Assembly (NCBI GenBank): GCA_011109175.1
Contig: RDEW01000013.1
Coordinates: forward strand, 1,184,767 to 1,248,766
DNA: 64,000 nucleotides
Direction: 5' to 3'
DNA from: Dicyema japonicum
Lineage: Eukaryota > Animalia > Dicyemida
Below are positions 1,006-41,601 of this stretch, one piece after another; the stretch's first letter is position 1, and each line of letters begins with the position of its first letter. A program made the translations under genes and the position numbers. The notes under the pieces were generated by a model. It saw nothing but the letters and a program-made list of their open reading frames with translations, was not told the origin of the DNA and did not search any database.

Positions 1006-1446
1006 ATGTTACCTTTACTGATAACATTTGTTTCTTTAGTAATGCACAGAGGACCATTCGACCAATCTCAAAATTTAGATGGTGAATTAATTATAGTTGA
1101 TTTAACCGAAGAACATTGTAAAAGAAGGTTTCAATCGCTTCGTAGTCAAATAAACGCTTTCAATGAAAGTCACTTTTATTTAAATAGTCATGTTAATGGC
1201 ATCCGAAACAAGAACAAAGATATTTGTAATGATGAATTTAATAATATAATGTATTATGCAACATTAGGACATCTTCGCGAAAATAATGAAAAATATAAGA
1301 GTGCTGACCCACAGACATTTTGCGAGAAAATTTCTTTTGTTAGAAAAGCACTGACAATACTTTCTGAAAGCCAGAATGCTACAACTAATAGATTAGAACT
1401 GTACTTGACTTGTGTGAAGAGCATGTCGTCTAATCGTGAGAATTAG
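1006..1446 (+). CDS. Small secreted Cys-containing protein, family copy 1. Two exons with a probable 30-nt in-frame intron at 1082-1111; about 136 aa spliced
   Basis: Hydrophobic N-terminus MLPLLITFVSLV. Exon 1 is 76 nt, as in copies 2-4. GT..AG intron at the position homologous to the 28-nt introns of the paralogs. Shared motifs CNxEyNNiMYyxTlGhLR, YC/FC and TCV. No domain recognised. Confidence 0.8.
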   Translation: MLPLLITFVSLVMHRGPFDQSQNLDGELIIVDLTEEHCKRRFQSLRSQINAFNESHFYLNSHVNGIRNKNKDICNDEFNNIMYYATLGHLRENNEKYKSADPQTFCEKISFVRKALTILSESQNATTNRLELYLTCVKSMSSNREN

Positions 1447-2249
1447 TCAGCTAATGGATAATTTTACTTTCTCAGTTAAAATCGTTATCAATAAATTTTC
1501 TTTATTCATTAAAATATAGAATGAAAATAATTAGTGTAATTGGGAACGAATTAGGCTAGTGCAGGTCAAAGGAAATAATCATCCCTTGGACATCGTTTGC
1601 TACGTCTAATTGTCTTCGATCTGATTTGTTCTAATTCTTTTGTTCTAACAAGTAAAACAAGCCAAATAAAGTATCTTGTCCAATTTACTAAACTGATCCG
1701 TTGATAGTTAAATTAATCCAAAATTATCATTACATCAGGTATAATTTTAAATTATAGACTTTTTGTTCATTATAAAGTTTTCTTTGTTGTTTTGTATTGT
1801 CGTGAAGTACTAAAATTGCATAAAATAACTTTATCATTTAGGATAGATGTGACCTCCAGTTCTATTCGTGTTAAGTCAACAATATTATTCACTCTTAGAT
1901 TTCGTTTGTGTTCAATATGCTCGAGTCAGAAGGTATTCTTTTCTGTTTATCGAGTTTTATGAATTATTATGGTTTTCGGAAACTCTAAAAATAACATTTT
2001 TAGGATTTTTAGAATTCCTGATATTCATAATCTGATATCACAATCATCATATATACAGTAAGATAGCTACTAGTTCTCTTTCCTTTTTTTACTGTAGTGG
2101 TATGTCATATGATCCACATGTTTCATGTTGTGTCCAGTTCAAAGGTGGCTCGAAAAAGGATCATTTATCTCCCACTGAGGTATCACGCAGTCATCACTAT
2201 TCTGGTTCTAATTGTTGAATGTTCCGCACATTTATGATGATTTGGTATT

Positions 2250-2445
2250 ACGATTGACGCTGTCATCAATAAATGCTTCACTGCAGAACCAGATTGTTCG
2301 AATAAGACACACATAGGAAAAAAAAAAAAAAAAAGTTAAAGGACATTACTTGGTTCCTCTCTCCCTTAATACGGTTCGTTACTCAAAGTGTGTCCTGTTT
2401 ATGCGGAACTATAAATAATAAGACTTTCGCGAAAAGGTTGTTAAT
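2250..2445 (+). mobile_element. Degenerate copy of SINE family A (body and RTE-type tail, no tRNA head)
   Basis: Aligns by eye to the 31265-31590 element (gacgctgtcatca..cactgcagaacc..gtgtgtcctgtttatgcggaactataaat..ctttcgcgaaaa). Confidence 0.6.
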
Positions 2446-3337
2446 ATTAATTTTTATTATATCGATAAAAATATAATTGAGTCGATTCTAACTTAATTTA
2501 ACATTTCTAATCTCAAAGTGAATTAATGATTTGAATGTTACGATGGTGACTTATCCATATTCTCTATTGCAATAAATTTCTGGTCAGCTTCTAAATGGCT
2601 AAACCTTTTCTTTATCGTAACGTGAGTTTGGACAAGGTAAAGTACTCAAAAACATCGGAAACCAGAGGTTCTAAACGAAGCACTGTCTTATGCTCGTAAT
2701 ATCTGAATTAAATCCCGTAAGCCAAAAAAATTAAAAATCTTTGAAGAAGTGTCATAATCGTGGAATGGTAGCTAAAATTCTCAACTAACGTCTATTCTGT
2801 AGACATAGTCCTTTTCTCAGTGGAATAAAAATTCGAAATTTCTTTGCTTTAAAAAATACTTGAAAGTTGAATATATCTCTAAGCAACCTTCTCGGAGGCG
2901 TGCAAAGAGCTGTCATTAGCTTCTACACGTAAACGAAACAGGGTTCTAAAATTTATTTAACTCAACAATAATTATTGAATAATCACATTAGCAAGATGTT
3001 CCAATGTTATAAATGATATAGTTCCAGGTTCGAATTTTGCTGATGTACATTCCAAAAGAAGGTTTCTCGCATCTGCGATGCTTATGGTTTGACGGGTGAT
3101 TTCTTGAAAGAGAGGGTCAAAAATATCTCAATGCCCCCTAGTTAAAAGGTTTTAATGGAAGTTGGGGATTATCACATATTGGAGTCTTAGTTTAAGCAAC
3201 TTGTGAGTGATACTAATCATGTTGTCGACATCAGGTAAAATATATTCTCAGCTGTTAGTCGTGTGAAAGCAAAATAAATTTATAAATATGCATTCACATC
3301 TTATTTTATATAAAAGAACATTTACGTTAGCCAAGTA

Positions 3338-3779
3338 ATGCTACCTTTTATGATAAGATTGATTTCTTTACTAATACAGAAAAGACTACTGGACCCAGCT
3401 CAAATATTACCAAGTAATTAAATTATAGGTAATTTTAATAGTTCAACAATGTGAAAGAAGGGCTATTTTTATTCTGGTGCAATTTTACAAATGGATACTA
3501 AGTCACTCTCAATTAAAAAATCACATTAATGGTATTCGAAATGAAAACAGGGATATTTGTAATGAAGAATATAATAATATAATGTATTATGCAACATTAG
3601 GGCATCTTCGCGAACTTAATGAAGAATTTAGAAGGGATAACCCAAAAACTTATTGCCAGAAAATTCCTTATATTCTTGAAGCACTGTCAATATTTACAGA
3701 TAACCAGAATGCGACAAATAATGGATTTGAACTTTACTGGGCGTGTGTGGAAAGTACATCGTCTAATGTTGAGAATTAG
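3338..3779 (+). CDS. Secreted family copy 2, intact. Exons 3338-3413 and 3442-3779, 28-nt intron, about 137 aa
   Basis: Splicing gtaattaaattataggtaattttaatag joins MLPFMIRLISLLIQ... in frame to ORF 3477-3779. Clear paralog of copy 1. Confidence 0.8.
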
Positions 3780-3916
3780 TTAACTAGTTGATAATTTTAC
3801 TTTCTCGGTTAAAACGTTATCAATAAATTTTCTATATTCATTAAAATATCAGGTTTATAATAGTTAGAAGGTATAAGCAACAAATCAGGCTACAGCTGGC
3901 AAGCGGAAGATCGTTA

Positions 3917-4104
3917 TAAAAAATTAAAATAATTCCAATGACCAAGAGTAACCAAACTAACTAACTCATTGATCCTGACTTGTTCCAGCGTTCCAGAAGT
4001 TGTCTCCAAGAAACAGATAGTCCCCGGGGAAGAATAGTTGGATCCTCTTGATGCCGGACAGGCATTATGCATCTCCTCAGTAAAGTGATCCATTGATGCC
4101 ATCG
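3917..4104 (-). mobile_element. SINE-like family C copy (pseudoknot core plus LINE-derived tail, head absent)
   Basis: Reverse complement aligns to 38063-38290 and 43757-43970. Confidence 0.75.
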
Positions 4105-5503
4105 ACTCCATGAATTTTTTTGGGATTCCATGAATTTTTTCTTGTTTTTCTGCACCTCTCCTTGGCAAATCATATCATAGCGTTTACTGCACTGAACAGA
4201 GACTTAATCGCTAGTGATGTGTCAGATCTAATTAAAATAGATTTCCTAAGAAAAATCTGTTGATGCAATCAACAAATTTGTCCTTGAGTCTCTTGTACCT
4301 ATTAGTCTATTGGGAGTTCCCTTTTAACAATTTCTTAAGGGAAATGTCATCAGTCGGTTAGCAAACTCTTCAGCTTTATCATGCGGACTGAATGCCGAAT
4401 TTTTAGCATTTTGCTGATTTCATTTATTTGGCTCCGAATTTTTTTTAATTTTATTGCCCAAGGATCAATGTGTTAAAAGAGAAAAAATGTCCTCTGCTGA
4501 CTAAGTGATCTCAAATCATTAAGAGATCGCAGATTTGAATGCATAGCTAATCTATTTGCAGGGGGAACATGCTAGAATTATCAACTGCGTTTACTGTCCT
4601 CCCCTTATCAACAACGATTAATTGGTGAGAAGATTATTTCAGTACGTCTACTTTAAGTAATTAAGTTATGTGCGAAAATAATAATATGAACGGTAGGGTT
4701 TGTCAACAGACTTCTACACAGACAGCCTCACAAGAAATCAACAAAATCATGGTTATATTTGAAACTCATGGTTAAGTCTCAAATACTTTAGTTCGGTCTT
4801 TGTAACCTCGAATAAGATTTTCGATAGTTCCACCAACCTTGCAAATTTTTCCTTCCACCACAGAAAAAGGGTACACGAAAATTTACCTCGTAAGCATGCT
4901 TCAGAGCAAATTGCGAGTTTTCTCAGATTTTTTAAAAATTAACTGTCTCCTTTTCGGTTCGTACCGTTGTTCTTAACCGTTGAACATTCAAGGAAATATT
5001 GGGAAGTAGATGATATTAAAAATGGTCTCCTACTCGATTTTAACTTTCTAACTCATAACAGAGCGTTTGTAGCTTTTTTTTTCGTATTTCGGAATGATTC
5101 ATGAAAATACCTCCCTGGTCAATTGAGAGGGCAAGGTATTTCAAAGCCTTCTTCTGAGATATGTTTTGTAACGTGTCTTTATTTAATTAGCCTCCTGCTT
5201 CCATTTATCCTCACCACACTACGCTTCTCATCTGCGACTAAAAGAAAGTTTTCATTACACAAATCTTCGATCAGTTCCATATATTTCTTAAACCGTTGGG
5301 TTTAAAGAGACATGATAAGTTATGACGTCATCAGCGTACATCAAGATTTCTGTACGTGGGTTTTCTTGGGAAGGCAATTTACTCATTACAATGTTAATAG
5401 AAGAGGACTGAGAACTGAATTCCTATCGACACCTCTGTTCAGTCAAATTTCACGAGAATCATATTTTAAAAATTAAAAATTGATTTATTATCCTTATTTT
5501 TTA

Positions 5504-5660
5504 CCACATGGTGCAATGTGGTGTTATAAGGCTAGTTTGTTACATAATATTTTCCTTCCTTTCGATGGCGTCCTTGGAATCATTTTACTGATGAGACGCT
5601 CAATGCCTGGCCGACATCAAGAGGATCCAATTCTTCTTTTCCGGGGAGACAAGTTCTGGA
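5504..5660 (+). mobile_element. SINE-like family C copy, 3' truncated
   Basis: Palindromic head at 5504-5521 and core at 5567-5628, homologous to the other C copies. Confidence 0.7.
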
Positions 5661-5674
5661 ATTAAATTAAATTA

Positions 5675-5988
5675 ATTAACCCCGGATACACCGAGAAAAA
5701 AGTTAAAGTAAACAACTAATTAAGTGTATCCAGTTTCCATTTATACAGAAACAGACTCCATTGGAAATCAGCATAAAACGAATAAGACGTCCATCCTTGC
5801 AGTTGTGGAAACCCCTCAAGTGGAGTGGGGGAGAGCAAATGATCCTTTTTTGTGCCGGCCAGGCACTGGGCGCCACCTGGACAGGTGGATCACATGACGC
5901 CACTCTAATAGAAAGAGAGATGAGAAACAGACAAACAAACATAAAATTTAATCCATTAGGCATGCAGCACCACATGGCGCCACGCGAC
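5675..5988 (-). mobile_element. SINE-like family B copy (~310 bp)
   Basis: High similarity to 41602-41915 and 51945-52260. Ends in gtgtatccgggg followed by (ttaat)-like repeats. Confidence 0.8.
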
Positions 5989-6159
5989 AAAATTTTTTTT
6001 TTCTGGAATAATGGAATGAGTCAGGATAAAGGAGTTAGTTTGTTTGGTCCCTTGATCTTTGAAATAATTTTTATTCAATTAATTTAATTATTCAAAAATA
6101 AAATTTCTTTTCAACAACATTCATTTTTTTAAATAGTTATCCGAAAATTAAATCTCCAA

Positions 6160-7190
6160 ATCAGCCACCTCTCGAATCCGCCGCATATTTTCGAAAATAC
6201 AAAATTTCTTATGAGAAATCCTCGAATCCGCCAATTTCTCGAATCCGCCCATTTTTAAAAATATTTATTTTTTATTTTTTTAATTCAAAAATACTTCTAA
6301 ATGAGACATTATCATTTTTGTCTTGTTGGTCTTAATGAAACGTAATTGACAAGATTAAAAAATTCTGAAAAACTCCAAATTATAAAATTTATCGATCAAA
6401 ATCCAGGGATTTCGCTTACAAGAGTGTTCAAAATCTTTCAGACAGATTCAGACGTGTTATTTAAATGACCTGAGGAGCAAAAGGAATGTTTCCACCTTGT
6501 TTTTTCAGAATTATCTCGGAATCCATATTTGAAATTCAATGAAATCGATGAGGATATCATGTCATGGATTAAACTTATGGAAACCAAAGGAGCAATTCTT
6601 AATGACGCGATTACAAAGGCGGAGGGTTTATAAAGAAACACCAAATAGCTGATTTTAAAGCCAGTAGTGGATGGCTAGAGAATTTAAAGGACGAAATGGG
6701 TTGAAATTGATAAAAACTTTATGGAGAATCATTTTCAGAGAATTTCTCAAATTCCGAAGTTAATGATTTTTTCAATAATATAAAACCAAAAATAAAATAA
6801 ATGGTCGAGATAATGTCTATAATGCAAATGAGACTAGATTATTTAAAAAACTCTTATATGCAAAAGCATTTGCAAGATAAAGAGATTCTGGCATAAATTA
6901 TTGAAGGATAGAACATCGATAATGCTTTGTTAAAATTGGTACTAATAAACTAACACCATTCATAATTGGAAAATTCAAAAACCCTAGGTGCTTTAAAAAT
7001 TTTAGCTAGCAAAGTTTTATAACCCATAATAATTCCAGAAGATGAGTTTTTCTCTATTAGTATACAGAGAATAAAGAGATCCTTGAAAATTTGGATAAAA
7101 TTGATGAAGACAGAATGCATTAATGGTGGAGGACAATAGAATGAACAAGTTGTTTTAGACTGCAATGCAGTGAATGCTGTCTATACACTG
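6160..7190 (+). mobile_element. Decayed pogo/Tigger (CENP-B-like HTH + DDE) transposon
   Basis: Broken translation includes KLQIIKFIDQNPGIS, DEDIMSWIKLMETKGAILND, DNVYNANET and IGKFKNPRCFKN. Three ctcgaatccgcc subterminal repeats at 6170-6250. Confidence 0.7.
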
Positions 7191-7735
7191 AGGAAATACT
7201 TCAAACAGAAGAATGAAGTTGAACTAAACTTATGGTTCTATGTTCGACTCTTGCTGCTGTATATTCAAACTGATGGTTTCACACATCTATGAATCTAAGG
7301 GTTTGACTTGCATTTACTCGTAAACGAAGCAGGGGTTAAAATTATTTACTTCAGCAATAACTTATTTAATAACCTAAAACGGGATGACACATGTTATTAA
7401 TTCATATGGGACTGAATCGAATCTTGCTGCTGTACATTCAAAGGGTTCGACTTCTACGATTCTAAGGTTTCGACGGGTGACGTCGTCATCAGTGAATTGA
7501 TCGAATTAGAGGGTTAAAAAATCTCAATACTCATAGTAAAAAGGTTTTAAACAGCAAACAAAATTTTCATTATTGGATTATTGGTTTTAGAATCAGGATT
7601 GGTAATTATATTAATGTTCTCGATATCAGATAGAGTATATTCTCTAGGCTGTTTGCTGTATGAAGGCAAAATACATTTTTTAAATTTGCATGCACATCGC
7701 GTTAAATATAAAAGAACACATACGTTAGCAAATTA

Positions 7736-8176
7736 ATGTTAACTTTACTGATGACATTGGTTTCTTTAGTAATTAACAGCGTACCAATAAATTCAACTCA
7801 AAGATTACAAGGTAATTTTATAATAGTTGATTTTACTAGATCAACAATGTGAAAGAAAGGCTATTAGGCTTGCAGTGCGAATTGACGAATGTAGGGGATA
7901 ATCTTGGAATTAAAATCCAGCGTTGATGCTATCCGAAATGAGAATGAAGATAATTCTAACGAAGAATATAATAATTTAATGTATTATTGCACATTAGGGT
8001 ATCTTCGGGAACATTATGAACATTTAAAAAGGGATAACCCAACGACTTATTGTGGCCAAATTCCCTATCTAAAGATAGCACTGTTAATGATTTACGATAA
8101 CGTGAAAGCCACAAATACAAGATTAAGTGAGTACACTACATGTGTAAATAGTACACCGTCTAATCATGATAATTAG
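7736..8176 (+). CDS. Secreted family copy 3. Intron 7812-7839; one -1 frameshift at the GGGG run near 7873 (pseudogene or assembly error)
   Basis: Same exon structure as the other copies. Reading frame shifts between DEC and LELKSSVDAIRN. Confidence 0.7.
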
Positions 8177-9049
8177 TTAACTAATGGATAATTTCACTTT
8201 TCCGATTAAATAGTTCTTTATTCATTAAACAATTAGAGTGGCATTAGCAATAATTCAGGCTATAGCTGGCCGGACATAGGAAACTAATGAAATACTCATC
8301 CTTTAAAGATCGTTCCGTTTTGTCTAATTGTCTCTATTATATCTGGACTGAAAGAATTGGGAAACGAGTTTTAATGAAATTGGTTATTCGATTTAGAAAT
8401 TTTAAAGTTCCTCGGATTTGGCGTAGTTTGTTGCTATCACAATGTCTCTTGAAAACAGAGTCTGATTTGTTGCTAACTTATTTTTCTTTGAATTATTAAA
8501 AGAGCACAAAATAAATTTTCATGCTAAATTTAACAAAATTAGATATTAATAGTTAAATGAATCCAAAATTATCTTTACATCAGATTTTTAAGGAGAAAAC
8601 GATTTATCATGAAACAAGACAATCAAAATTATCCAGCTGATCAAATGGAATGGCTGTTTATTAGGACAACTGCCAGAGAAATCTATTGGAACAACCATTC
8701 AGTTTCCAGATGCTCATTATAGAGCATAAACTTTTTTTTGCTTTAACTCAAAAAACAACATTTTTAGGATTTTTAGAATTGCTATTTTTATAATCTGATA
8801 TGAAAATAATAATATATTCACCATTATAGCTGTTCTTTCTCTTATCATGTTCTACTAGAGTGGTGTGTTATGATATACCTGTTTCCTGCTGCGGCCAGTG
8901 CTAGAGTATCATGATAAAGGATTATCTGTTTTCTCACACTCCTTGTGAGTGCTTCCAAAAGCAAGGATGAAAAGTCTTATTCATTTTTCATCGTTTCTAG
9001 ATTCACTTAAGTGGAATATTGGTACGTCTGTGTTTCATCGCTGCGGAAT

Positions 9050-9690: not shown

Positions 9691-10665
9691 ACCTCTATTA
9701 ATTTCAAATGGGAAGGAATATGCTCCAACCTGATACAGCAAGTATAAAGACATCTTAGATATTCATAGAGTGCCGGGGTGCATCATTGAAAAACTCATAG
9801 CGATCAGGAAAGAGACTATTAGCAAAGCTATCGTCCCTTCCCACCCTTGTTTTTGGAACCACTATCGTTTTCATTAGTCTCATTTTGCTATGAGGGCCGC
9901 ATTTTGTAATAATTTATATAAACTTTCTAACAATAGCCAGTGTCAATATTGAGTACGAGCTTACCCAGGATTACCCTCGGAAACGGCTGAGACTATAAAG
10001 AAAAAGAAATACAAATGTATCGCTGGGCAGTTCATTTATGAACAAGTCGTCGTCAAATATTTGTACTCATTGGAAACAGATACTGACCCTGCTGAACCTT
10101 AATGGATCGTTTATCATGAGGAGGAAAAAATAAGAGAGAAAGGAGCTGGCTTATTAAACTCATTTCTTTCACGAATTAAAATAAATAAAAAACAAGTATT
10201 AGTGATAAATTTATGTGAAAACACAAGTAAAAAAGTTTGAAGAATTGCAGATATTAATCAAATTATTTTTATTTTTTGTTAGATTTTTGCTTTAGGTTTG
10301 TAAAAGTATACAACTTTCGGAAGTGATTGAATGTTTAGAAGAAAGCCTGCATCTTCCACTTACCATGAAAATGAAAGAGGTGTGAGGCTCGGTAGATATA
10401 AGAAACTCTAAATTTAAGATCGAATGGAGATACGGGTTCGAATATCGGAAAACAAAAAAAAACTTGGAAGATAAATATCAGAAACAGCATGTTTAGAATG
10501 ATTCTAAGTATGTTGTTGATCATAATAAAAATAACAAAATTACGTGTTGGAATAAAGTATAACAATGAAGGACAAGTAAAGTTTATAAAAATGTAGGAAT
10601 AAGCCATAATAGTCTTATTATTATTATTATTATTTATTAAAGCACTTTCACGAAAGCCACAATGA

Positions 10666-12315
10666 TTATAGCCCCGCATGTGCAACACTCAAAGAAACAA
10701 TATTTATAGTTAGTCTTTTCCATCTTCCTCTGTCGAATGCGAGTGATCTCAATTCGTCCAGGTCGTCTCCCGTCTTTAGATTTTTTCTCACACGATTTAA
10801 GTCTTTGTTTAGGGCTGTCGGAAGTGTCGATCTAGGTCGTCCGCGGAAGGGTTTTTCGCATCTGTCAAAGTAATCTTCCATCGCTTTGTTAGCGGGTGCG
10901 TCCGGGTTCATTCTTAGTACATGCCCAAATAGCCTCCACCGGGCATCTATCACATCCTTGCTGATGTAAGAACACATACACTTGTTGTAGATACCAGTGG
11001 TTGATATTCTACGTGGCCACTCCATTCCGAGTAAGCTTCTTAGTTGCCTTCTATGGAACGAATCCAGTTTCAATAGTTCTTTGTTGAAGGAACTTCCCCA
11101 TGTCCCAGCGTTATACAGTAGGATCGGTTTCACAAACGCGTTGTAAAGCCTGCATCTGATGTCAATTCCAAGTCCTTTGGCCCTTAGCCATCCTTTCTTC
11201 AGTTTAGCCATTGCCGCATTTGCCAGTGTTTTCCTCCTTAGTACATCTTCAGCGTCTCCTAGTAGAGAGCCGAGCTTATTAGTACGTCTCCATCTTTCAT
11301 GAGTAATATCGTCTTCTCTTTTGATTTCCGTAATTTCAGTTTTGTTAACATTTACGCTGAGAAACCATTTCTCAAGCTCCGCAGGTGCATTTTCTAGCAG
11401 GTGTTGGAGTGCGGTCACATCCCGTGATACAAAATCCACATCATCCGCATAAGATGTCTCTTCTATGTCTCCTATATAGCATTTACGGAGGTCGCGGAGT
11501 GCAGATTCAAGGTATATGGTGAATAGTAAAGGGGAGAGGGAATCACCCTGGGGTGTCCCAATCGTTGTTTTGAAACTGCGGGAAGTTGCTCCTTCTGTCC
11601 TCACAGATAGTCTTGTGTTCGCAAGTAGTAGTCTGATTATCCTAACCGACGATTCATCCAATATTTGCTCAAGCACATTCATCAGTTTCTGTCTGTTTAT
11701 TGAGTCGAAAGCTCTGGAGAGATCTATTCCCAACACGGTTGTTGCGCTCTTGAATCTTTGGTGCGTTGCGCAGCGCCATCTGTGGCTCCATACAATGTCT
11801 GCCGTAGACCTCCCTTCTCGGAACCCACTTTGACTTGCTGGTAGGTATAGATCCGCCACACCCTTTATCCGGCTTAGTGCAATGTTTGCCAGCACCTTGC
11901 GTATCGAATTCAGAAGTATTATCGGGCGGAGATTTTCTACTGGTCCTTTTGATTTGTTCGGTTTTTGTATGGGTATTAATAATCCATTTCCAAGTCCTAG
12001 ATCGGTATTAGTTTCAAAGACGTCATTTAGGGTTTTTGCAATTGTGTCGCTAAGTTTTTTTGGCCCATATTTTAGGAGCTCAGGGCTTATGTTGTCCGGC
12101 CCAGCACTCTTGTTGTTCTTCAGTTTATTTATCGCTAATTCCACCTCTTCCACTGTGATTGGGATTTTTAGCGCCTTTGCTTCTCCCTGGAAAGGGGGAA
12201 AGTCATTATTTTCTTTATTCAACAGTGTTTCGAAGTGTCGTGCAATCAATTCTGCTTTTTCTTCCGGGTTACCCACTTTGTCCTTTCTTTGTCCGCAGCA
12301 GCCGCAAAGCCGCAT
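10666..12315 (-). CDS. RTE reverse transcriptase (RT and thumb region of the single ORF)
   Basis: Motifs KSAGPDNI, RPIILL, QSGFREGRST, IDLSRAFDS, QGDSLSPLLF, YADD, RWRLFGHVLR, RGRP. Confidence 0.93.
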   Translation of the reverse strand: MRLCGCCGQRKDKVGNPEEKAELIARHFETLLNKENNDFPPFQGEAKALKIPITVEEVELAINKLKNNKSAGPDNISPELLKYGPKKLSDTIAKTLNDVFETNTDLGLGNGLLIPIQKPNKSKGPVENLRPIILLNSIRKVLANIALSRIKGVADLYLPASQSGFREGRSTADIVWSHRWRCATHQRFKSATTVLGIDLSRAFDSINRQKLMNVLEQILDESSVRIIRLLLANTRLSVRTEGATSRSFKTTIGTPQGDSLSPLLFTIYLESALRDLRKCYIGDIEETSYADDVDFVSRDVTALQHLLENAPAELEKWFLSVNVNKTEITEIKREDDITHERWRRTNKLGSLLGDAEDVLRRKTLANAAMAKLKKGWLRAKGLGIDIRCRLYNAFVKPILLYNAGTWGSSFNKELLKLDSFHRRQLRSLLGMEWPRRISTTGIYNKCMCSYISKDVIDARWRLFGHVLRMNPDAPANKAMEDYFDRCEKPFRGRPRSTLPTALNKDLNRVRKNLKTGDDLDELRSLAFDRGRWKRLTINIVSLSVAHAGL

Positions 12316-12411
12316 ACATCCTTGAATTGTCTTTTAGGCATTCCACATCTTTTAATAGGGATGTAATAATTTCCCGTGAGTGTTTTCTGTTCATCTTTTT
12401 GATTTTCCACT

Positions 12412-13190
12412 TTAGTTCCCTTTGTTGGATATTAAGCTCTTTTTTTTACTCTCGTCTGACGTGTTTGCCGCTTTTAGTCGTAGCTCTCTGCAATGCTTTG
12501 CCATATTTGGCACGTTCGGGTGGTGATCCAATTTTAGGGCGTGATGATTTCGAACTCCAAGGCATATTTTGGCCGACTTGGAGATTGCCTGTTTTGTTTG
12601 ATCCCACATAGTTCGTACTGATGATTCCGGTGCGGTTTTCACCATAAGAGTCTCGATTTGTTCGTGATATTTAGCTCTACAAGTTTGCTCTAACCACAAT
12701 TTTTCTGTCTGAAAGTATATATTGGGTCTTTGTCTCGCCTTCTTCGCGTTTTCAATGTATTTTTTACCAGTCAGGTGCTTTTTTACACAAAGTTTTGCAA
12801 TGACGATCCTGTGGTCGCTGTCGGTTGTTGTTCCCTGGTAGGAACGTGCATCATTTATCAGGTGTTTATCAGACTTTAGGCAGATAATGTAGTCGATTTG
12901 ATTATATATATTCACGGTCTCTCCGACAGAGTTTTTTCTTTGTCCGTGCCACGTCGTCTTGTGGCAAGCTGAGTGCGTAAATGCCGTGTTGCACAGGAAA
13001 AGGCTATTTGCCTCACAGAAGTTTACCAGAGAGGCTCCAGATGCATTTCTCCTTCCGCGTCCGTGTCTTCCAATAGAGGATTCTTCGGGCCCCATTCGCA
13101 TTCCGGCCTTTGCATTCATATCTCCCGCAACAAAGACAAGAGGCGAGGAAGCATTGTTAGAGTATGTGCTTGATAGTTCTGAGTAGAATT
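12412..13190 (-). CDS. RTE AP-endonuclease region, separated from the RT by frameshifts
   Basis: Motifs EEFYSEL..VAGDMNAK, LCNTAF, IYNQIDYII, DSDHRIV. Frameshifts near 13190, at the A8 run near 12442, and near 12285. Confidence 0.85.
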
Positions 13191-13351
13191 CCTCAGTTCA
13201 CCGGGGTTCTTGATTACTCGTCTTTCAGTTATTATACCAAAGCATGAACATTTCTAGTTTCCAGTTATTATACCATAGCATGAACATTTCTAGTTTCATA
13301 GAAACGGACTAGCCTGGATATTTCTTAGGAATAACGTGAACGACATTGAAT

Positions 13352-14183
13352 CATTATTATTAAAAGCACTTTCACAGAGCCAAAGAACATTATATAAACA
13401 AAGGTTCCGTTTTTACCTCACATTTCGCTATTTGCTTCACTAGGCATCTCCATCGCCCTATGTTTTGAGAATCTGTCTGTAGATCCTCTAGTTTTGTTCC
13501 AATTCCATTAAGTTCCTTGTTTAGAGCCACAGGGAGGGTGAATCTGGGCCTTCCTCTGAAAGATGGTATGTTCTCATTGTCAAAGTAATTATCCATTAAT
13601 ATATTTGCAGGGACGTTTATGTAGCATGTGCCAAAACAGTCTCTATCTTGATTAAATAATGTCGATGCTAATTGTACTCGATTTTGCCAGAGAGTAGAAT
13701 TTCTTATTTGAAATCTTCTTGGTCAACCTATGCCCATTAAATTGCGTAATTGTTTTCAATGAAATACATCTATTTTCTTGAGCTAGCTCTTTTTCCTCCA
13801 ACTTTCGTCAATATATTTTAATAGCCCTGTGATTCTTATCTGTTCAGCCTTTTCCTGATTAACTCGCAGAGACCAATTCTTTAATTATCACAAAGATTTT
13901 ATCTAGAGCAAGTCCAAGATCATTTTCTTACATAAAATCTATGTCATCTGCATGTATAATCTCCATCGGCATGCATCCTTTATATTATGTTCTACAAGAC
14001 TCAATGGCGCTTCGAGGTATACGGCGAATAGAACCGGAGATAGAGAGTCCCCCTGAGGTATTTAAACTTTTATCCCAAAAGGCTTCGTGTTCCCAACTCG
14101 TACAATTAATTCAGTATTAGATAATATGAAACGGACAAGTCTTGTGATATCCTCATCAAGGAAACTCCCAGCAACGCACAGAA
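13352..14183 (-). mobile_element. Older 5'-truncated RTE insertion with 9-bp TSD ACATTGAAT
   Basis: TSD at 13343-51 and 14184-92. PQGDSLSP and RGRPRFTLPVALNKEL motifs. Empty site with a single ACATTGAAT at 33091. Confidence 0.85.
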
Positions 14184-16712
14184 ACATTGAATAACGTGAT
14201 TAACATTTTTTTTAAATAAAATAATTTTAATTTTCGAATAATATTAAATTTTATATAAATGATAGAGACTTTTCTTCCTAACTCCGTTTATTATCCGATA
14301 GGTTACGGGTGCCCCCAAATGGTAAGGAAAAGTTGATGGCTCTTTTCGTTTTTTTCCTGGATGCGTGACACCTTTTGGGAGAGCCCAAAAAATCACGTTA
14401 AGCACGTGTTAATTAGATGTAATTTTTTTTCATTTCAAACCGTCGTTCGAAAGAAAATCAAAAATTTTCATTGATCCTGTCTAGATACTAGTAACAAGGT
14501 CTCCCTCAATTCTTGGTTTGATGTTCGACAGGCTGTTGAATTTCAACTCCCGTGTAAGATAGTCCTTATTAAAGACCTGCAGAAGTTGAACGTTGTATGC
14601 GTGCTTGTCTGAAGGACTTCTTTGAAATTAGATGCTTCTGTTACAACAATCTACCTGCAAACTATCGCCCCGGCTGTGGAGTACGCCGCTGTTGCGTGGA
14701 GATTCGCGTTGTAAAATACTACGCTACACAGACTCAATTAAATCTGGAAAACTATTCGTATGATTGGCCGTCATTCTGATCAATATTTACTCCTTACTCA
14801 CGTATCCAGATTCCTTTGGGTCGGCATGGAGGATGGAACCCACTTAGCTTGTCCTTATCCAAGGCAAAAGAGATTGGATTGATTGGGAAGTTTCTTTCCC
14901 CAATCGGATCCTTTGCAGGAATGAACAAAGGCTCTCTCGCACAGTAGTGGAACAATGGTAAACCACAGACATAGGATGACTCGTATGATTGCGGAAACTG
15001 GGATTACCTAACTGTCTGACGTTTTTTATGTCTTTCTAGTTGATCCGGTTATCCTCTTTTAGGTAGCATTTTTTCTCTCAGATTTTTATAGATCTGATCA
15101 ATTCTTTGTTCAATTCTCAATCATCTATGGTCATTAAGAGATTTAGTCTCACTTTTCCAATGGTTTGTGCTATCACTCGCGTCGCATTTAGCTGATGGTT
15201 CTATTCTCAGATCGATACTTACTTGGTCCAAGAATTTATTATGCTTGTTGCATTTTTCAATTCCTAGGGACGTCATTAAATCCGCCAAAATTAAATGCCT
15301 AATGTCATGGCGTCCAAAAAGAATCTTTCTCTTCTCTATTGCAGTGGAGGGTTCCCATAATAGTGGATCTTGCAAAAACGTGATGCTGGAAAAGGATAAG
15401 TCTGACCGAAGAACTGTATAAAACTTTTTTTACGTATATCTGGGGTAATTAAAAATTAAAAAAATATAAATAATTTTTTTAAATAATTACCAGTATAAAT
15501 TTGGTATGAAAGTAACCTATTTCTTCTAGATTTTCTTATTTTAATTCATAACGCAAAATTTCTCAAAATATCATTTTAGAAATAATGAGTGCTACTCTTT
15601 TTAAATTTCATTTCAGTTTATTGAGATATAAAAATTATTTTTTGCTGAATTTTTCATATTTGACCCATTTCCTAAAATAACTAACTCGTAAATCAAAATG
15701 AAAAATTAGAATATGTACGGAAATACAGTCTGCTCTTATAAATATGCATTTATTTGTGAGAAATATGGAATCTCTTAAGCAAGTCCGACTGAATAGAGAA
15801 GAAATCCTATGTGCATTCTGTTCTCTGTTAAATTTGGTAAATTAAAACTTATTGCTTGAAAATTAAATTCTTAATTTGATATTGCTTTTAAAAAAACCTT
15901 AGAAGTTTAACTTTATGACTTGCATCGATCTGGAGAGACCTCACGTGTAGTAAAAAGAAGAAAACAAGAAATTATTGGCGAGGTGTTTTCTAGTGCGGCA
16001 CAGTAGTTGAAAGGGATCTTTCTACTTTCTCCATGACCAAATCCACTAATGAAGATTACCTTTATGAAAACTCTCCTCCGAAGATTGAAGAGATTCAGCG
16101 ACGGTAGGAAGTGTGATGAAAATGTAAGAGAGTGAACCAACTCGCTATATTGTAAGCCTGGGGAAAATAAATAAAACATATAGATGCTTCTGTTACAACA
16201 ATCTATTTATTTTCTTGATGAAAAAAATCAATAGTATATATAGACTAGGTGTAACCTGTTTGGATGTGTGCAAAAAGCTGTCATTAGCTTTCTACCTTTA
16301 AAAACGCAGGGGTAACAATTATTTACTTTAGCAATACCTTATTGAATAATCCCAAAACAGGATAGCCCAGTGTTATCAATACATATAGTTCTAATTTCGA
16401 ATCTTGCTGCTTTTTATTCCAACTGAAGGTTTAACACATCTAAAATGTTGAAGGTTTGACGAATGACGTTTTCATTAGTGAATGGCTTTAATAAAAGGGT
16501 TAAAAATCTCAATAGTACCAGTTTAAAGGTTTAAAGGTCAAACGGAATTTTCATTAATGGATTGTTAGTTTTAGAATTAGGATTTGTAATTATATCAATG
16601 TTCTCTATATCAGATTGGATATATTTTCCTGGCTGTATGAAAGCAAAATACATTTTTTAAATATGCATGCACATCGCGTTCAATATAATAGAACACATAC
16701 GTTAGCAAATTA

Positions 16713-17157
16713 ATGTTAACTTTACTGATGACATTGGTTTCTTTAGTAATTAACAGCGTACCAATAAATTCAACTCAAAAACTTCAAGGTAATTTTATTA
16801 AAGTTAATTTTACTAGATAAACAATGAGAAAGAGAGGATATTATGCTTGCAGTACAATTTGACGAATGTAAAAGAAAAATCATAGAATTAAAAACTCTCG
16901 CTGATGTTATCCGATTCGAGAACAAAGATAATTGTAATGAAGAATATAATAATATAATGTATTTTCGCACATTTGGGCATCTTCGCAAACTTTATGAAGA
17001 ATTTAGTTGGAACAGCACAAATGCTTATTGTGTGCAAATGCCTCATCTAAGGTTGGCACTGCTAATTATTTGCGATAACGTGAAAGTCACAAATACAAAA
17101 TTAAGACTGTACACTACATGTGTAAATAGCACATCGTCTAATCATGAGAATAGTTAA
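16713..17157 (+). pseudogene. Secreted family copy 4, with nonsense TGA at 16825-27 replacing a conserved Cys codon
   Basis: Intron 16789-16816. TGT in copies 1, 2, 3 and 5 is TGA here. Confidence 0.75.
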
Positions 17158-19682
17158 CTAATGGATAATTTCAATATTTCTGTTAAATAGATCTTTATTC
17201 ATTAAATAATTAGAGTGACATTAGCAACAAATCAGGCTATAGCTGGCCGGACTTAGGAAACTAATGAAATACTCATCCTTTAAAGATTGTTCCGTTTTGT
17301 CTAATTGTCTCAATATATCTGGAGTGACTGGAAGAATTGGGAAACGAGTTTTAATGAAATTAGTTATTCGATTTAGAAATTTCAAAGTTCCTCAGATTTG
17401 GCGTATATTCTTGCAATTACGATATCTCTTGGGAACAGAGTCTAATTTGTTTCTATTTTTTTATTCTTTGATTTATTAAAAGAGCAAAAAATAAATTTTC
17501 ATGCTAAATTTAACAAAAAATAGGTTAATAAATGAATCCACAATTATCTTTACATCAGATTTTTTATGAGAAAACGATTTATTACGAAACAAGACAATCA
17601 AAATAATTCAGCTGATTTAATGGAATAGCTGTTTACCCTGACAACTGCCAGAGAAATCTTTTGGAACAGCCATTCGGTTTACCGATGCTCATTACAGATT
17701 ATAAAATTTTTTTGTTTTAACTCAAAAAACAACATTTTAGGATTTTTAGAATTGTCGATATTTATAATCTGATTTGAAAAATTTTAAATATTAACCATTA
17801 TAGCTGTTCCTTCTCTTATCATGTTCTACTATAGTGGATGTCATGATATACATGTTTCCAGCTGCGATAAAGGATCATTTGTTTTCTCACACTATTTGTG
17901 AGTGCTTCCAAAAGCAAGGATGGGAAGTCTTATTCATTTTTCATTGTTTCTAGATTCACTTAAGTGGAATATTGGTACGTCTGTGTTTCATCGCTGCGGA
18001 ATCGGAATTTTCCGCCCTTTATGAAAAAGTTTCCTAACTCCTTACAGATACGTTGGGACCCCTGGCGATTTATCAACGTTTCCGCCTCTGAAAAAAGACT
18101 GGGGATGGATATGGTGTCTGATTGCATTTGCTACATGATCATCCGCCAGAGCGTTCACACGCTAGACCTACAAGGGGGAAGAGTGAATCTCTAAGTAAAA
18201 CATGCATATTCAATCGTCGTAGTATAACTTGGAGATATAGTTTGCAGATACAAGCAGTAGGTGACAGGGCATCTTCTTATGTAACTTTTAAACGCTCTAT
18301 TTTTCGAAGACCCTTTGTTAACACTTCCTTTGTGTTTTTTAGAAACATCATAAGAAAATCAAATGTCACTCCAAAGATGTACTGGATTCGCGTATAAGGA
18401 ATCGGAATGTTTTATGAGGAATATCTCAAGTCCACCCTTAAATCTCCTGTCTTAGTAAATAGGCAGAACTGAGACATTGATGCAGACATAAACAACAAAT
18501 TAACGGATAGCCAGTCACACACCTGGTTGAGGTGTGACTGAACCACCACCTCAGCCCTGGAAGGAAATTCCTCCCTTGCAGCAATAATCAGGTCATCCGC
18601 GTAGGATAAACACATAGTGTGTTGATCTTTGGACCTCTATTAATTTCAAATGGGGAAGGAATATGCTTCAACCTGATACAGCAAGTATAAAGACATCTTA
18701 CATATTCATAGAGTGCCGGGGTGCATCATTGAAAAAACTCATAGCGATCAGGAAAGTGACTATTAGCAAAGCTATCGTCCCTTCCCACCCTTGTTTTTGG
18801 AAGTACTCACATGGAGTAGGAGAGACAAATGATTCTTTATCATGCCACTCTGGCTCTGGACGCAGCAGGAAACTGGTATATCATGACATTGCTTCGAAGC
18901 CGTATTTTTTAATAATTTATATAAACTTTCTAACAATAGCTAGTGTCAATATTGAGTACGAGCTTACCCAGGATTACCCTCGGAAAGGCTGAGACTATAA
19001 AGAAAAATAAATACAATATATCGTTGGGCAGTTTACTTTTTGAACAAGTTGTCGTCAAATATTTGTACTCATTGGAAACTGATACTGACTTCGCTGAACC
19101 TTAATGGATCGTTTATCATGAGGAGGAAAAAATAAGAGAGAAAGGAGCTGTCTTATTTAACTCATTTTTTTCACAAAGTAAAATAAATAAAAAAAAAGTT
19201 TTGGTGATAAATTTATGTGAAAACACAAGTAAAATAGTTTGAAGAATTGCAGATATTAATCAAATTATTTTTATTTGTAAAAGTATACAACTTTCGGAAG
19301 TGATTGAATGTTTAGAAGAAAGCCTGCATCTTCCACTTACCATGAAAATGAAAGAGGTGTGAGGCTCGGTAGATATAAGAAACTCTAAATTTAAGATCGA
19401 ATGGAGATACGGGTTCGAATATCGGAAAACAAAAAAAAACTTGGAAGATAAATATCAGAAACAGCATGTTTAGAATGATTCTAAGTATGTTGATGATCAT
19501 AATAAAATAACCAAGTAACGTGTTAGAATAAAGTATAACAATGAAAGACAAGTAAAGTTTATAAAATGTAGAAATAAGCCATAATAGTCTTCCAGTTAAT
19601 ATACCAAAGCATGAACATTTCTAGTTTCATAGAAACGGACTAGCCTGGATATTTCTTAGGAATAACGTGAACGACATTGAAT

Positions 19683-20486
19683 CATTATTATTAAAAGCAC
19701 TTTCACAGAGCCAAAGAACGTTATATTAACTAAGATCCCGTTTTTACCTCACATTTCGCAATTTGCTTCACTAGACATCTCCATCGCTCTCTGTTTTGAG
19801 CATCTGTCTGTAGATCTTCTAGTTTTGTTTCAATTCCATTAAGTTCCTTGTTTAGAGCCACAGGGAGGGTGAATCTGGGCCTTCCTCTGAAAGATGGTAT
19901 GTTCTCATTGTCAAAGTAATTATCCATTAATATATTTGCAGGTAAGTTTATGTCGCATGTGCCAAAACAGTCTCTATCTTGATTAAATAATGTCGATGCT
20001 AATTGTACTCGATTTTGCCAGAGAGTAGAATTTCTTATTTGAAATCTTCTTGGGTCAACCTATGCCCATTAAATTGCGTAATTGTTCTCTTTTTCCTCCA
20101 ACTTTCGTCAATATATTTTAATAGCCCTGTGATTCTTATGTGTTCAGTCTTTTCCTGATTAACTCGCAGAGACCAATTCTTTAATTCTCACAAAGATTTT
20201 CTCTAGAGCAAGTCCAAAATTATTTTCTGACATAAAATCTATGTCATCTGAATGTATAATCTCCATCGGCATGCATCCTTTATATTAAGTTCTAAGAACA
20301 CTCAATGGCGCTTCGAGGTATACGGCGAATAGAACCGGAGATAAAGAGTCCCCCTGAGGTATTTCAACTGTTGTCCCTAAACGCTTCGTGTTGCCAACTC
20401 GTACTTTGAATTCAGTATTAGATAATATGAAATGGACAAGTCTTGTGTTATCCTCATCAAGTAAACTCCCAGCAATGTACATTACA
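19683..20486 (-). mobile_element. Unit-B duplicate of the older RTE insertion
   Basis: TSD ACATTGAAT at 19674-82 and 20487-95. EIPQGDSLSPVLFAVYLE motif. Confidence 0.85.
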
Positions 20487-20619
20487 ACATTGAATAAACG
20501 TGTTAACATTATTTATTTTAAATTAAATATTTTTAATTTTAGAATAATATTAAATTTTATATAAATGATAGAGACTTTTTTTTCCTAACTCCGTTTATTA
20601 TCTGATAAATCCTTTAATG

Positions 20620-20825
20620 CTCTAATGGATTGGGTCTTACTAAAAGACTTTACATCACCCCTCTTGTATTTCTTTCAAAACCCTCCCGTCCACAGAGAAG
20701 CTGTGTTGGATCTCGGAAGGTCCACCGGAAAAAGATGAGAGACCTGATGGAGGAGGCCGGGATCACCTAATTAGTTTAATACAATTAAATTAACTATTGG
20801 TGTTCTTGGGTTAAATAAATAATAG
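20620..20825 (+). mobile_element. 3' end of an I-like LINE
   Basis: aaaagatgagagacctgatggaggaggccgggatcacctaa..ggttaaataaataat matches the 3' end of the 27630-28445 element. Confidence 0.55.
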
Positions 20826-23191
20826 CTTACGGGAGGTAGGGAAAAGTTATGGGAGGTAGGAAAAGGGAAAAGTTGATGGCTCTTTTCGTTCTTTTCCTGG
20901 ATGTGTGACACATTTCGGGAGAGCCAAAGACATCACGTTAACACATGTTAATTAGATGTTAATTCCTTTTACCTCAAACCGTCGTTCATAAGAAGATCCA
21001 AAATTTTCATTGATCCTGTTCAGATACTAGTAACAAGGTCTCCCTCAATTTTTGGTTTGATGTTCGACAGGCTGTTGAATTTCAACTCCCGTGAAGAAAG
21101 TCCTTATTAAAGACCTGCAGAAGTTGAACGTTGTATGCGTGCTTGTCTGAAGGATTTCTTTGAAATTAGATGCTTCTGTTACAACAATCTATCTGCAAAC
21201 TTTCGCCCCGGCTGTAAAGTACGCCGCTGTTGCGTGGAGATTTGCGTTGTCAAAGACTACGCTACACAGACTCAATTAAATCTGGAAAACTATTGGTATG
21301 ATTGGCCGTCATTCTGATCAATGGTTACTCCTTATTTACGGATCCAGATTCCTTCGGGTCGGCATGGAGGATGGAACCCACTTAGCTTTTCCTTATCCAA
21401 GGCAAAAGAGATTGGATTGATTGGGAAGTTTCTCTCCCAATCGGATTCGTTTGCAGGAATGAGAAAAGGCTCTCTCGCACAGTAGTGGAACAATGGAGAC
21501 CACAGACGTTGGATGACTCGTATGATTGGGGAACTGGGATTACCTAACTGTCTGACGTTTATGTCTTTCTAGTGATCCGGTTATCCTCTTCCAGGTAGCT
21601 TTTTTCCCTCAGATTTTTATAGATCTGATTAATTCTTCGTTCAATTCTAAATCATCTATAGTCATTGGGAGATTCAGACTCACTTACTTTTTCAATGGTT
21701 AGTGCTATCACTCGCGTCGCATTTAGCTGAGGGTTCTATTCTCAGATCGATACTTGCTTGGTCCAAAAATTTATTATGCTGTTTGCATTTTTCAATTCCT
21801 AGGGACGTCATTAAATCCGCCAAAATTAAATGCCTAATTTCATGGCGTCAAAAAGAATCTTTCTCTTCTCTATTGCAGTGGAGGGTTCCCATAATAGTGG
21901 ATTCAAAAAAGATGATGCTGAGAAAGGATATTTCCGACGGAAAGGTATATCTGGGATAATTAAAATAATATAAATAAAATTTTAAAATAATTACCAGTAT
22001 GAATTTGGTATGAAAGTAACCTATTTCTTATTTTCATTCATAACGCAAAATAATTCTCAAAATATCATTTTAGAAATTATGAGTGCAAGGAATTTTGTGA
22101 TCTCTACTCGTTTTAAATTTCATTTCACTTTATTGAGATATAAAAATTATTTTTTGCTGAATTTTTCATATTTGACCCATTTTCTAAAATAACTAACTCG
22201 TAAATCAAAATGAAAAATTAGAATATGTACGGAAATACAGTCTGCTCTGTAGAAATATGCATTTTTTGTGAGAAATATGGAATCTCTTAAGCAAGTCCGA
22301 CTGAATAAAGAAGAAATCCTATGTGCATTCTGTTCTCTGTCAAATTTGGTAAATTAAAACTTATTGCTTGAAAATTAAATTCTTAATCTGATATTGCTTT
22401 TGAAAAAACCTTAGAAGTTTAACTTTATGACTTGCATCGATCTGGAGAAACCTCACGTGTTGTAAAAAGAAAACAAGAAATTATTGGGGAGGTGTTTTCT
22501 AGTGCGGCACAGTAGTTGAAAGATCTTTCTACTATCTCCATGACCATTTCCACAAATGAAGATTACCTTTATGAAAACTCTTCGCCTAAAATTGAAGTGA
22601 TGTCGCGACGGTAGGAAGTGTGATGAAAATGTAAGAGAGTAAACCAACTCGCTATATTGTAAGCCTGGGTAAAATAAATAAAACAATTTATTTTCTTGAT
22701 GAAAAAAATCAATAGTATATATAGACGAGGTGCAACCTGTTTGGATGTGTGCAAAAAGCTGTCATTAGCTTTCTACCATTAAAAACGCAGGGGTTAATAA
22801 TTATTTACTTCAGCAATACCTTATTGAATAATCCCAAAACAGGATAGCCCAGTAATCAATACATATGGTTCCAATTTCGAATCTTGCTGCTTTTTATTCC
22901 AACTGAAGGTTTAACACATCTAAAAGTTGAGAGTTTGACGGGTGACGTTTTCATTAGTGAATGGCTTTAATAAAAGGGTTAAAAATCTCAATAGTACCAG
23001 TTAAAAGGTTTAAAGGTCAGACGGAATTTTCATTAATGGATTGTTAGTTTTAGAATTAGGATTTGTAATTATATCAATGTTCTCTATATCAGATTGGATA
23101 TATTTTCTCGGCTGTATGAAAGCAAAATACATTTTTTAAATATGCATGCACATCGCGTTCAATATAATAGAACACATACGTTAGCAAATTA

Positions 23192-23635
23192 ATGTTAACT
23201 TTACTGATGACATTGGTTTCTTTAGTATTAACAGCGTACCAATAAATTCAACTCAAAAACTACAAGGTAATTTTATTAAAGTTGATTTTACTAGATAAAC
23301 AATGTGAAAGAGAGGCTATTAGGCTTGCAGTGGAATTTGACGAATGTAAAAAAAAAATCTTAGATATAAAGACTCTCGTTGATGCTATCCGAATTAAGAA
23401 CAAAGATAATTGTAATGAAGAATATAATGATATAATGTATTATTGCACATTTGGGAATCTTCGCAAACTTTATGAAGAATATAGTTGGAACAGCACAAAT
23501 GCTTATTGTGTGCAAATGCCCCATCTAAAGTTAGCACTGTTAACTATTTGCAATAACGTGAAAGCCACAAATACAAGATTAAGACTGTACGCTACATGTG
23601 TAAATAGTACACCGTCTAATTATGAGAATAGTTAA
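23192..23635 (+). CDS. Secreted family copy 5. Intron 23267-23294; exon 1 is 1 nt short (frameshift, real or assembly error)
   Basis: gtaatt reads gtatt in exon 1. Exon 2 is open to the stop codon. Confidence 0.7.
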
Positions 23636-24741: not shown

Positions 24742-24823
24742 GTCTGGAAGCGAGAATGTCACAAATACTATATTTTACCAGTACAAGATGTGTGTGGACA
24801 GTACATAATCACCGTGAGAATTA
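24742..24823 (+). pseudogene. 3' fragment of a sixth family copy, plus its downstream flank
   Basis: SGSENVTNT..YKMCVDST resembles SESQNATTN..YLTCVKSM. The flank matches the sequence downstream of copy 1. Confidence 0.55.
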
Positions 24824-41247: not shown

Positions 41248-41601
41248 AGCAACAATCTTTTCAGACAAACTTTGATCGTTCGAAGCTTCAATAGAATCAA
41301 TCATTAAGTTGCACAAAGCATTGCAGATGGTATTATAGATAGTGACAATAATCTGGATAAATGTTTTCCCTTTCAAAATTACTCAAAAAATACATTAAAT
41401 AATTAACCAACCTAGTATTCTAAACAAGAGGTCGAATTTTCTTGAATTTTGTTAGATTTCCAATAACATTAAAAACTGGTAATAAAATACAATTATTTCC
41501 TTAAATTTTTCAAAAAAAATCTTGAATCAATCAATCCCGTAAAATTCGACAAAGTAACACTTTTGAGGTTAATTATCTATCACAAAGAAGAAATCAATTA
41601 A

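Follow-up and report, generated by a model that had tools for sequence, protein, structure and literature searches.

In the conotoxin superfamilies, a conserved signal lies beside a hypervariable mature peptide with conserved cysteines (Cys), and parasitic flatworms have lineage-specific secreted families such as the micro-exon genes of Schistosoma. The gene-conversion models of Innan and Teshima concern duplicated genes in which islands of divergence stand amid concerted evolution, with the RHD/RHCE type as the example. Dicyemids, which parasitise the kidneys of cephalopods, are extremely reduced animals with ~5,000 annotated genes, and to our knowledge almost nothing is known about dicyemid–host interaction. 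In crotaline venom phospholipase A2 (PLA2) genes, the mature coding sequence is less conserved than the untranslated regions (UTRs), introns and signal region, and nonsynonymous divergence (KA) is about equal to or greater than synonymous divergence (KS) (PMC7285919, summarising Ogawa 1992 and Nakashima 1993/1995). Here we analyse a family of secreted-type, two-exon genes in the dicyemid Dicyema japonicum, a parasite of octopus kidneys; the family forms a tandem array in a 64,000-nt stretch of contig C35 (G000:C35:1184767-1248766). This whole stretch is called the window below, and positions are given in its coordinates; it has a G+C content of 30–40% and contains zero N. Whole-assembly searches covered 67,542,437 bases in 377 contigs, corresponding to the published assembly (67.5 Mb, 377 scaffolds, mean intron 38 bp, heterozygosity 1.24%; PMC6736024).

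An earlier, sequence-only reading of the window had proposed an expanding family whose coding exon diverges much faster than its flanks, through diversifying selection or exon-limited gene conversion. We favour, with a probability of roughly 0.6, a different account: a lineage-restricted secreted-type family of D. japonicum, in which the gene cassette is kept and exon 2 changes fast, in which copies arise and decay by birth and death, and in which exon 2 of two array members, copies 4 and 5, would be an old island amid homogenised flanks.

The resemblance to the crotaline PLA2 genes is close in organisation: this too is a tandem family of secreted-type genes whose UTRs, intron and signal exon are more conserved than the mature coding region. 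It extends to a ratio of nonsynonymous to synonymous divergence (dN/dS, omega) near or above 1 with site-level positive selection, as estimated with our own implementation and in the presence of recombination. The two systems differ in that the Dicyema protein has an unrelated fold (a predicted orphan helical bundle with no enzyme motif), its gene has two exons and a 28-nt intron, many copies are broken, and the contrast between copies 4 and 5 reflects a mosaic history rather than KA > KS. As in conotoxins, a conserved signal and regulatory context stand next to a fast-diversifying, Cys-framed mature domain; unlike in conotoxins, this domain is helical and far larger, a pro-region is absent, and the animal is a parasite, not a venomous predator. 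Like the Schistosoma micro-exon genes, the family is orphan, signal-bearing, clustered in tandem, fast-evolving and presumed to act at the host interface, but it has a single large variable exon, no micro-exon skipping, and no kinship in sequence or fold. The D. japonicum genome and transcriptome papers mention neither this family nor secreted orphan families. The genes would thus appear to follow the known pattern of fast-evolving tandem secreted-type genes in a previously undescribed family.

A conserved cassette around a variable exon 2

Repeat finding and self-BLAST of the window located five copies of a ~0.6-kb unit, at ~925, 3257, 7655, 16632 and 23111. A uniform gene model could be drawn for all five, with two exons and a phase-1 GT..AG intron, which is 28 nt long except in copy 1, where it has 30 nt and is in frame. 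Upstream of the ATG, each gene carries a conserved block of ~50 nt, in which a 12-nt motif is followed by a TATA-like box ~30 nt before the ATG. Exon 1 (76 nt) encodes Met followed by ~12 hydrophobic residues, a signal-like N-terminus as judged from exon 1 translations only, whereas exon 2 (335–341 nt, ~111 codons) encodes four conserved Cys and usually one N-glycosylation sequon. A conserved 3'UTR of ~65 nt ends at AATAAA or ATTAAA. The predicted spliced product has 136–137 residues, in agreement with the at least five two-exon paralogs of ~136 residues that the sequence-only reading had described at these places. That reading also described four near-invariant Cys; copies 3 and 4 have each lost one of the four. 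The ~30-nt spacing of the TATA-like box from the ATG holds throughout the family and points to an extremely short 5'UTR, or else to some other start mechanism, and the box reads TATAAT, not TATAAAA, in copies 4 and 5.

All five copies lie on the forward strand, and two are intact. Copy 1 (956-1495) consists of the motif at 956, the TATA-like box at 977, exon 1 at 1006-1081, the 30-nt intron at 1082-1111, exon 2 at 1112-1446 and AATAAA at 1490. In copy 2 (3288-3827), the motif lies at 3288, the TATA-like box at 3307, exon 1 at 3338-3413, the 28-nt intron at 3414-3441, exon 2 at 3442-3779 and AATAAA at 3822. The other three are interrupted as assembled, which had gone unremarked. Copy 3 (7686-8230; exon 1 7736-7811, intron 7812-7839, exon 2 7840-8176) has a 1-nt deletion that leads to a stop at 7899-7901, and its second Cys codon is changed to TCT (7955-7957). 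In copy 4 (16663-17206; exon 1 16713-16788, intron 16789-16816, exon 2 16817-17157), a substitution, and not an indel, has turned the first Cys codon into TGA (16825-16827); on a speculative alternative, use of a downstream AG at 16851-16852 would give an in-frame intron of 64 nt and skip this TGA. Copy 5 (23142-23684; exon 1 23192-23266, intron 23267-23294, exon 2 23295-23635) has an exon 1 of 75 nt, in which a 1-nt deletion after 23227 leads to a stop at 23243-23245, and an exon 2 that is open in the family frame. A relic of a sixth copy, of which the end of exon 2 and the 3'UTR are all that is left, follows at 24741-24900 on the same strand. Interrupted copies were kept as assembled, and alignments took in their open pieces only. 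Retrocopies would be marked by intron loss, a poly(A) tail and absence of promoter homology, but all copies have the 28–30 nt intron and the upstream block; this retained intron and promoter ruled out a retrocopy or transposon-cargo reading.

Exon 2 of copy 2, searched against the assembly in six frames, returned 31 matches at ~28 sites on 12 contigs. Two contigs run collinear with the array at 95–96% identity: C10 (78.6 kb; G000:C10:19269-34355) and C80 (26.2 kb; G000:C80:16339-26204), with loci L031-L040. They are probably unmerged haplotypes, possibly more than two in the sample, or very recent segmental duplicates. After discounting them as probable haplotigs, ~20 loci remained, about half with an open exon 2. 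Which members are broken or rearranged differs between the C35, C10 and C80 versions; copy 0, for example, which lies just upstream of the window, is broken on C35 and open on C80. If C10 and C80 are extra haplotypes, family counts are inflated by them and null alleles are segregating. The family had been called expanding, a description that did not hold up: only 2 of the 7 array members on the C35 scaffold are intact, and birth and death fits better.

Aligning 15 genes revealed that the upstream block, 5'UTR, intron and 3'UTR are conserved even in the most distant members. Mean pairwise identity was 78–80% in the core promoter, 68–81% in the 5'UTR, 75–82% in the intron and 70–85% in the 3'UTR. 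Within exon 2, it was 53–61% in the first third and 58–65% in the last third, with 69–81% in the central motif, and it was 46–65% in the distal flanks. Exon 2 therefore evolves faster than its immediate functional flanks, and not faster than unconstrained DNA. Indeed, when the intact copies 1 and 2 were compared with their near-identical counterparts on C80 and C10, exon 2 differed by 1.8% and 1.2% and the far flanks by 3.6% and 3.9%, and we rejected the notion that the exon outpaces its flanks throughout the family. Two independent pairs, copies 3 and 4 and the genes C2c and C2d, repeat one combination: promoter, exon 1 and 3'UTR are conserved and exon 2 is divergent. Two family members, L024 and L025 (G000:C2:1053710 and 1058633), are 91–98% identical over the ~700-bp gene body only, with a synonymous divergence (dS) of 0.10 and unalignable flanks, which suggests that gene-sized conversion tracts or gene-sized duplication units may occur elsewhere in the family.

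The divergence profile of copies 4 and 5

Copies 3, 4 and 5 each lie within one of three tandem ~6.4-kb units that consist mostly of debris of old long interspersed nuclear elements (LINEs), with reverse-transcriptase fragments. We used a three-way alignment of copies 3, 4 and 5 and a two-way alignment of the units carrying copies 4 and 5, both on the forward strand. The first of these units, U4 (13255-19591), comprises old LINE debris, copy 4 and downstream DNA; the second, U5 (19585-24736), carries copy 5, and its homology to U4 stops near 24736.

Exon 2 of copies 4 and 5 (16817-17157 versus 23295-23635) differed at 32 of 341 positions (9.4%), compared with 2 of 104 (1.9%) in exon 1 plus intron and 13 of 828 (1.6%) downstream (17158-17985; Fisher p = 1e-8 for exon 2 versus this flank). 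Upstream (15501-16712), 43 of 1212 positions differed (3.5%), with 13 of 396 in the nearer part (16306-16712). The zone of high divergence (16784-17143) coincides almost exactly with exon 2. On its 5' side lies a low-divergence tract (16464-16783, forward strand) that spans the promoter, 5'UTR and exon 1 with 4 differences in 320 nt, and on its 3' side a second one (17144-17985, forward strand; ~1.6%) with runs of identity of 160–230 nt. By the Nei–Gojobori method, exon 2 contained 24 nonsynonymous differences over 264 sites and 7 synonymous ones over 64 sites. The earlier hand counts were thus close: 22 amino-acid-changing and 6 synonymous codon differences (~9%) over a slightly shorter span, and ~13 differences (~2%) downstream.

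These counts correspond to dN 0.097, dS 0.119 and an omega of 0.81, and so show no excess of amino-acid changes, a point that had been overlooked. Synonymous sites exceeded the near flanks (p = 2e-4), as did nonsynonymous sites (p = 1e-7). Since silent divergence is not raised by selection on the protein, exon 2 as a whole must either be older in its history than the DNA next to it or have had a greater input of mutations; and because dS in exon 2 is as raised as dN, protein-level selection alone cannot explain the contrast between the two copies. We accordingly attach very little credence to the view that diversifying selection by itself drove the exons apart after a young (~1.6%) duplication. 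The divergent zone is indeed exon 2, its nonsynonymous sites stand well above the near flank, and the family contains codons with an omega of ~3 (see below); against this, synonymous sites exceed the flank ~7-fold, beyond the reach of protein-level selection, omega for this pair is below 1, and both genes are disabled as assembled, copy 4 by the stop at its first Cys codon and copy 5 by the frameshift in exon 1. What had been claimed as a coding exon that changes faster than its flanks stands for this pair and fails for the intact copies 1 and 2, whose exon 2 is slower than the far flanks.

Looking beyond the near flanks, noncoding divergence between U4 and U5 ranged locally from 0.5 to 13%, with 7.7% over 14326-15500 and 5.2% over 13255-14200, and was strongly heterogeneous among 200-nt bins (p = 3e-18). 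Past ~17916 the topology flips: copies 3 and 4 differ there by 1–4%, and copy 5 is the outlier at 4–17%. This spread and the flip indicate that the units are mosaics produced by gene conversion or unequal crossing-over, a feature the sequence-only reading had not noted. Exon 2 did not differ from the noncoding segment 14326-15500 (p = 0.37), and a version of the claim in which the exon outpaces all noncoding DNA was rejected on this ground, with the proviso that the phase of the tandem duplication is uncertain and the comparison may date another event. The anomaly of copies 4 and 5 is that their flanks are unusually similar, not that exon 2 is unusually fast.

Gene conversion limited to the exon, in which an unsampled donor, either an array member or a divergent allele from another haplotype, replaced exon 2 in one of copies 4 and 5 and left the young flanks intact, is an unlikely explanation of the same profile. 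It draws on the observations that distant paralogs share only the ~700-bp gene body, so that ectopic tracts would be confined there, that a recombination signal is present inside exon 2, and that C10 and C80 carry divergent versions of the array. When the whole genome was searched at the DNA level with the genes of copies 4 and 5, however, no donor closer than the partner copy turned up (94% over 701 nt), and copy 3 came next at 85–86%. Moreover, with copy 3 as the polarising reference, 19 changes were assigned to copy 4 and 12 to copy 5, in interleaved order within exon 2 and not concentrated on one copy, and the promoter and exon 1, which paralogs also have in common, are unconverted. Conversion is involved, as the sequence-only reading had suspected, but the data favour homogenised flanks around an older exon 2 island.

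The substitutions in exon 2 are unevenly composed. Its 3' half (17011-17157) contains 12 transitions and 0 transversions, and its 5' half (16817-17010) 9 and 11 (Fisher p = 0.0016); noncoding DNA of U4 and U5 shows 118 transitions and 113 transversions. We tried and rejected a mutation signature as the source of the 12:0 excess, in which both directions and both strands occur with no deaminase-like signature. Targeted hypermutation of the exon for the mature peptide, striking silent and replacement positions alike, would account for the joint rise of dS and dN over adjacent DNA and could have left such a run of transitions. We consider it extremely improbable, as exon 2 is not above the distal noncoding part of the unit or the family-wide distal flanks, in the intact copies 1 and 2 the exon has diverged less than the flanks, and the changes have no directional signature.

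The mosaic and the lesions might also have been created during assembly, through use of the same flank consensus for both units or chimeric joining of haplotypes. The assembly combined Illumina reads with PacBio gap filling and HaploMerger under high heterozygosity (PMC6736024), three versions of the region exist (C35, C10 and C80), and the runs of 160–230 identical bases would be natural products of such an error. We nevertheless regard an artefact as very unlikely: the window has no N, the stop in copy 4 is a substitution and not an indel, and the conserved cassette with a divergent exon is also seen in the independent pairs of copies 3 and 4 and of C2c and C2d.

The profile resembles islands of the RHD/RHCE type, in which the flanks of tandem copies are homogenised and a short coding segment remains divergent at silent and replacement sites. 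Evidence for concerted evolution in the array comes from the noncoding heterogeneity, the topology flip, the differing trees of partitions of exon 2 and the recombination signal within it (both below). The likeness ends with the state of the genes: both Dicyema copies are disabled as assembled, which makes present-day selection on the island doubtful.

Selection on exon 2 and the predicted protein

To analyse selection across the family, we fitted codon site models with our own Goldman–Yang implementation (F3x4), using IQ-TREE branch lengths rescaled by one factor. The likelihood under M0 equalled that of IQ-TREE exactly (-2012.945), with an M0 omega of 0.88; pairwise omega ranged from 0.33 to 1.6 across the family. 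For ten close sequences, models with positive selection were preferred in all three comparisons, with likelihood-ratio test (LRT) statistics of 13.4 for M1a/M2a (p = 0.0012), 17.9 for M7/M8 (p = 1.3e-4) and 16.5 for M8a/M8 (p = 2.5e-5); the M7/M8 comparison, in which M8 was favoured, was the one the sequence-only reading had suggested. These models placed 22–26% of codons at an omega of ~2.6–2.9. Restricting the set to seven open-frame sequences retained the signal (M1a/M2a LRT 14.3, p = 8e-4; 24% of codons at omega 3.7), and it was also present in twelve open-frame sequences including distant ones (M1a/M2a LRT 7.4, p = 0.025; M8a/M8 LRT 6.4, p = 0.006).

Recombination within exon 2 was detected by the pairwise homoplasy index (PHI; p = 0.01-0.04). 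When the exon was divided into three partitions with their own trees, the trees differed and the selection test was still significant (p = 0.004 and 0.009). In 26 null simulations under M1a run through the same pipeline, the LRT reached a maximum of 5.1. Diversifying selection is thus supported across the family, with LRTs of 13–18 that outlast removal of the broken copies, partitioning and comparison with simulated nulls. It had been invoked earlier for copies 4 and 5, the pair with an omega of 0.81, raised dS and two apparently disabled genes, to which it does not apply. Conserved sites include the four Cys and a central helix rich in Asn, Glu and Tyr, and the candidate selected sites fall in helix 1, the junction of helices 4 and 5, and the C-terminal tail.

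The helices are those of an AlphaFold2 model of copy 2 exon 2, built from a 12-member alignment (predicted local distance difference test score 94, predicted template modelling score 0.81). It contains five helices, at residues 2-35, 40-50, 53-65, 70-86 and 88-110. From the Cys positions 3, 39, 71 and 101, we infer two nested disulfides, an outer one between the first and fourth Cys and an inner one between the second and third. For homology searches as for the fold, the input was exon 2 alone or the uninterrupted reading frame of copy 1. Pfam gave only sub-threshold noise, in line with the earlier statement that no domain is recognised. A profile of 12 members had 0 matches at E ≤ 0.001 among 1.84 billion representative proteins, and neither a sequence search of the PDB nor a word-indexed protein search returned a match. 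Similarly, the best score in the ESM Atlas was 0.84, under the lead threshold, and Foldseek against the PDB found no match (best E = 2.3). VIA-align, in a wide search and a second look, reached a best Z of 9.2 with a chain of bacterial PorM and ≤ 7.5 for the rest, a range common for helical bundles. Saposin-like, four-helix cytokine and chemosensory or odorant-binding folds were absent from the VIA-align and Foldseek matches listed. The family is an orphan, with no homolog, domain or specific fold match in these searches. The protein is probably secreted, judging from its predicted N-terminus, and a role at the host interface may be inferred.

Taken together, the account we favour would run as follows. 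The parts of the cassette needed for expression, secretion and processing would be held constant, and most of exon 2 would drift approximately neutrally (mean omega ~0.9); positive selection would act on about a quarter of its codons, and purifying selection on a conserved core made up of the Cys and the central Asn/Tyr-rich helix. The array would undergo birth and death through unequal crossing-over and gene conversion. Within it, the flanks of copies 4 and 5 would share a much more recent common ancestry (~1.6%) than exon 2 (dS ~12%): two exon 2 lineages would have diverged since an older split, and later homogenisation of the flanks would have been escaped by exon 2. The escape may reflect selection against convertants at a time when both genes still functioned, or rejection of heteroduplexes where the sequences had diverged. 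The tight fit of island to exon would suggest that the differences in coding were once of consequence, or else that conversion tracts are stopped by diverged sequence.

Several points weigh against this account. Random conversion tracts do not explain why the divergent zone matches exon 2, and if the two copies have long been dead, selection could not have shielded it. The spacer 14326-15500 may date the event between copies 3 and 4, not that between copies 4 and 5, depending on the phase of the tandem duplication. The single-base lesions and near-identical tracts could represent errors of a short-read, PacBio-filled assembly, in which C10 and C80 hint at several haplotypes. The site models come from our own implementation with fixed relative branch lengths, and recombination among paralogs can still inflate their signal. 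Finally, the gene models, secretion and pseudogene calls are predictions drawn from sequence alone, and the disulfide pairing follows Cys positions, not model coordinates.

Neighbouring sequence and a possible role at the host interface

Between the units carrying copies 3 and 4 lies a young LINE on the reverse strand (10616-13255). Its 549-aa open reading frame (10666-12315) encodes a reverse transcriptase (Pfam RVT_1, E = 7e-33), and a second one of 235 aa (12412-13119) has a weak endonuclease-like match. About 100–300 nt 3' of copies 3–5, on the forward strand, there is a conserved block with an open frame of 68–71 codons (8287-8499, 17264-17479 and 23742-23948). This block has no Pfam match and is recognisable also downstream of copy 1 and of the family member on contig C348; candidates for its identity are a further small gene, a regulatory element and an old repeat. 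Repeats resembling short interspersed nuclear elements are found between copies 2 and 3 (3914-4104 and 5667-6004), with further copies at 38104-38293, 43791-43974, 41586-41922 and 51945-52256.

A broader possibility is that D. japonicum has a general process by which the cassettes of secreted-protein genes, from promoter through signal exon and micro-intron to 3'UTR, are homogenised and the payload exon is excluded or preferentially mutated, at silent sites too. We think this very improbable; if it were true, the array would be one instance of a genome-wide mechanism of diversification at the host interface. For families of this kind, the array is a warning that raised divergence of an exon over its flanks is no proof of positive selection: here, silent sites and the wider repeat unit show that it is the flanks that are unusually alike. 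For D. japonicum itself, an orphan family of ~20 loci with a confidently predicted compact fold, site-level selection and rapid birth and death offers a concrete candidate for the interface between parasite and host.

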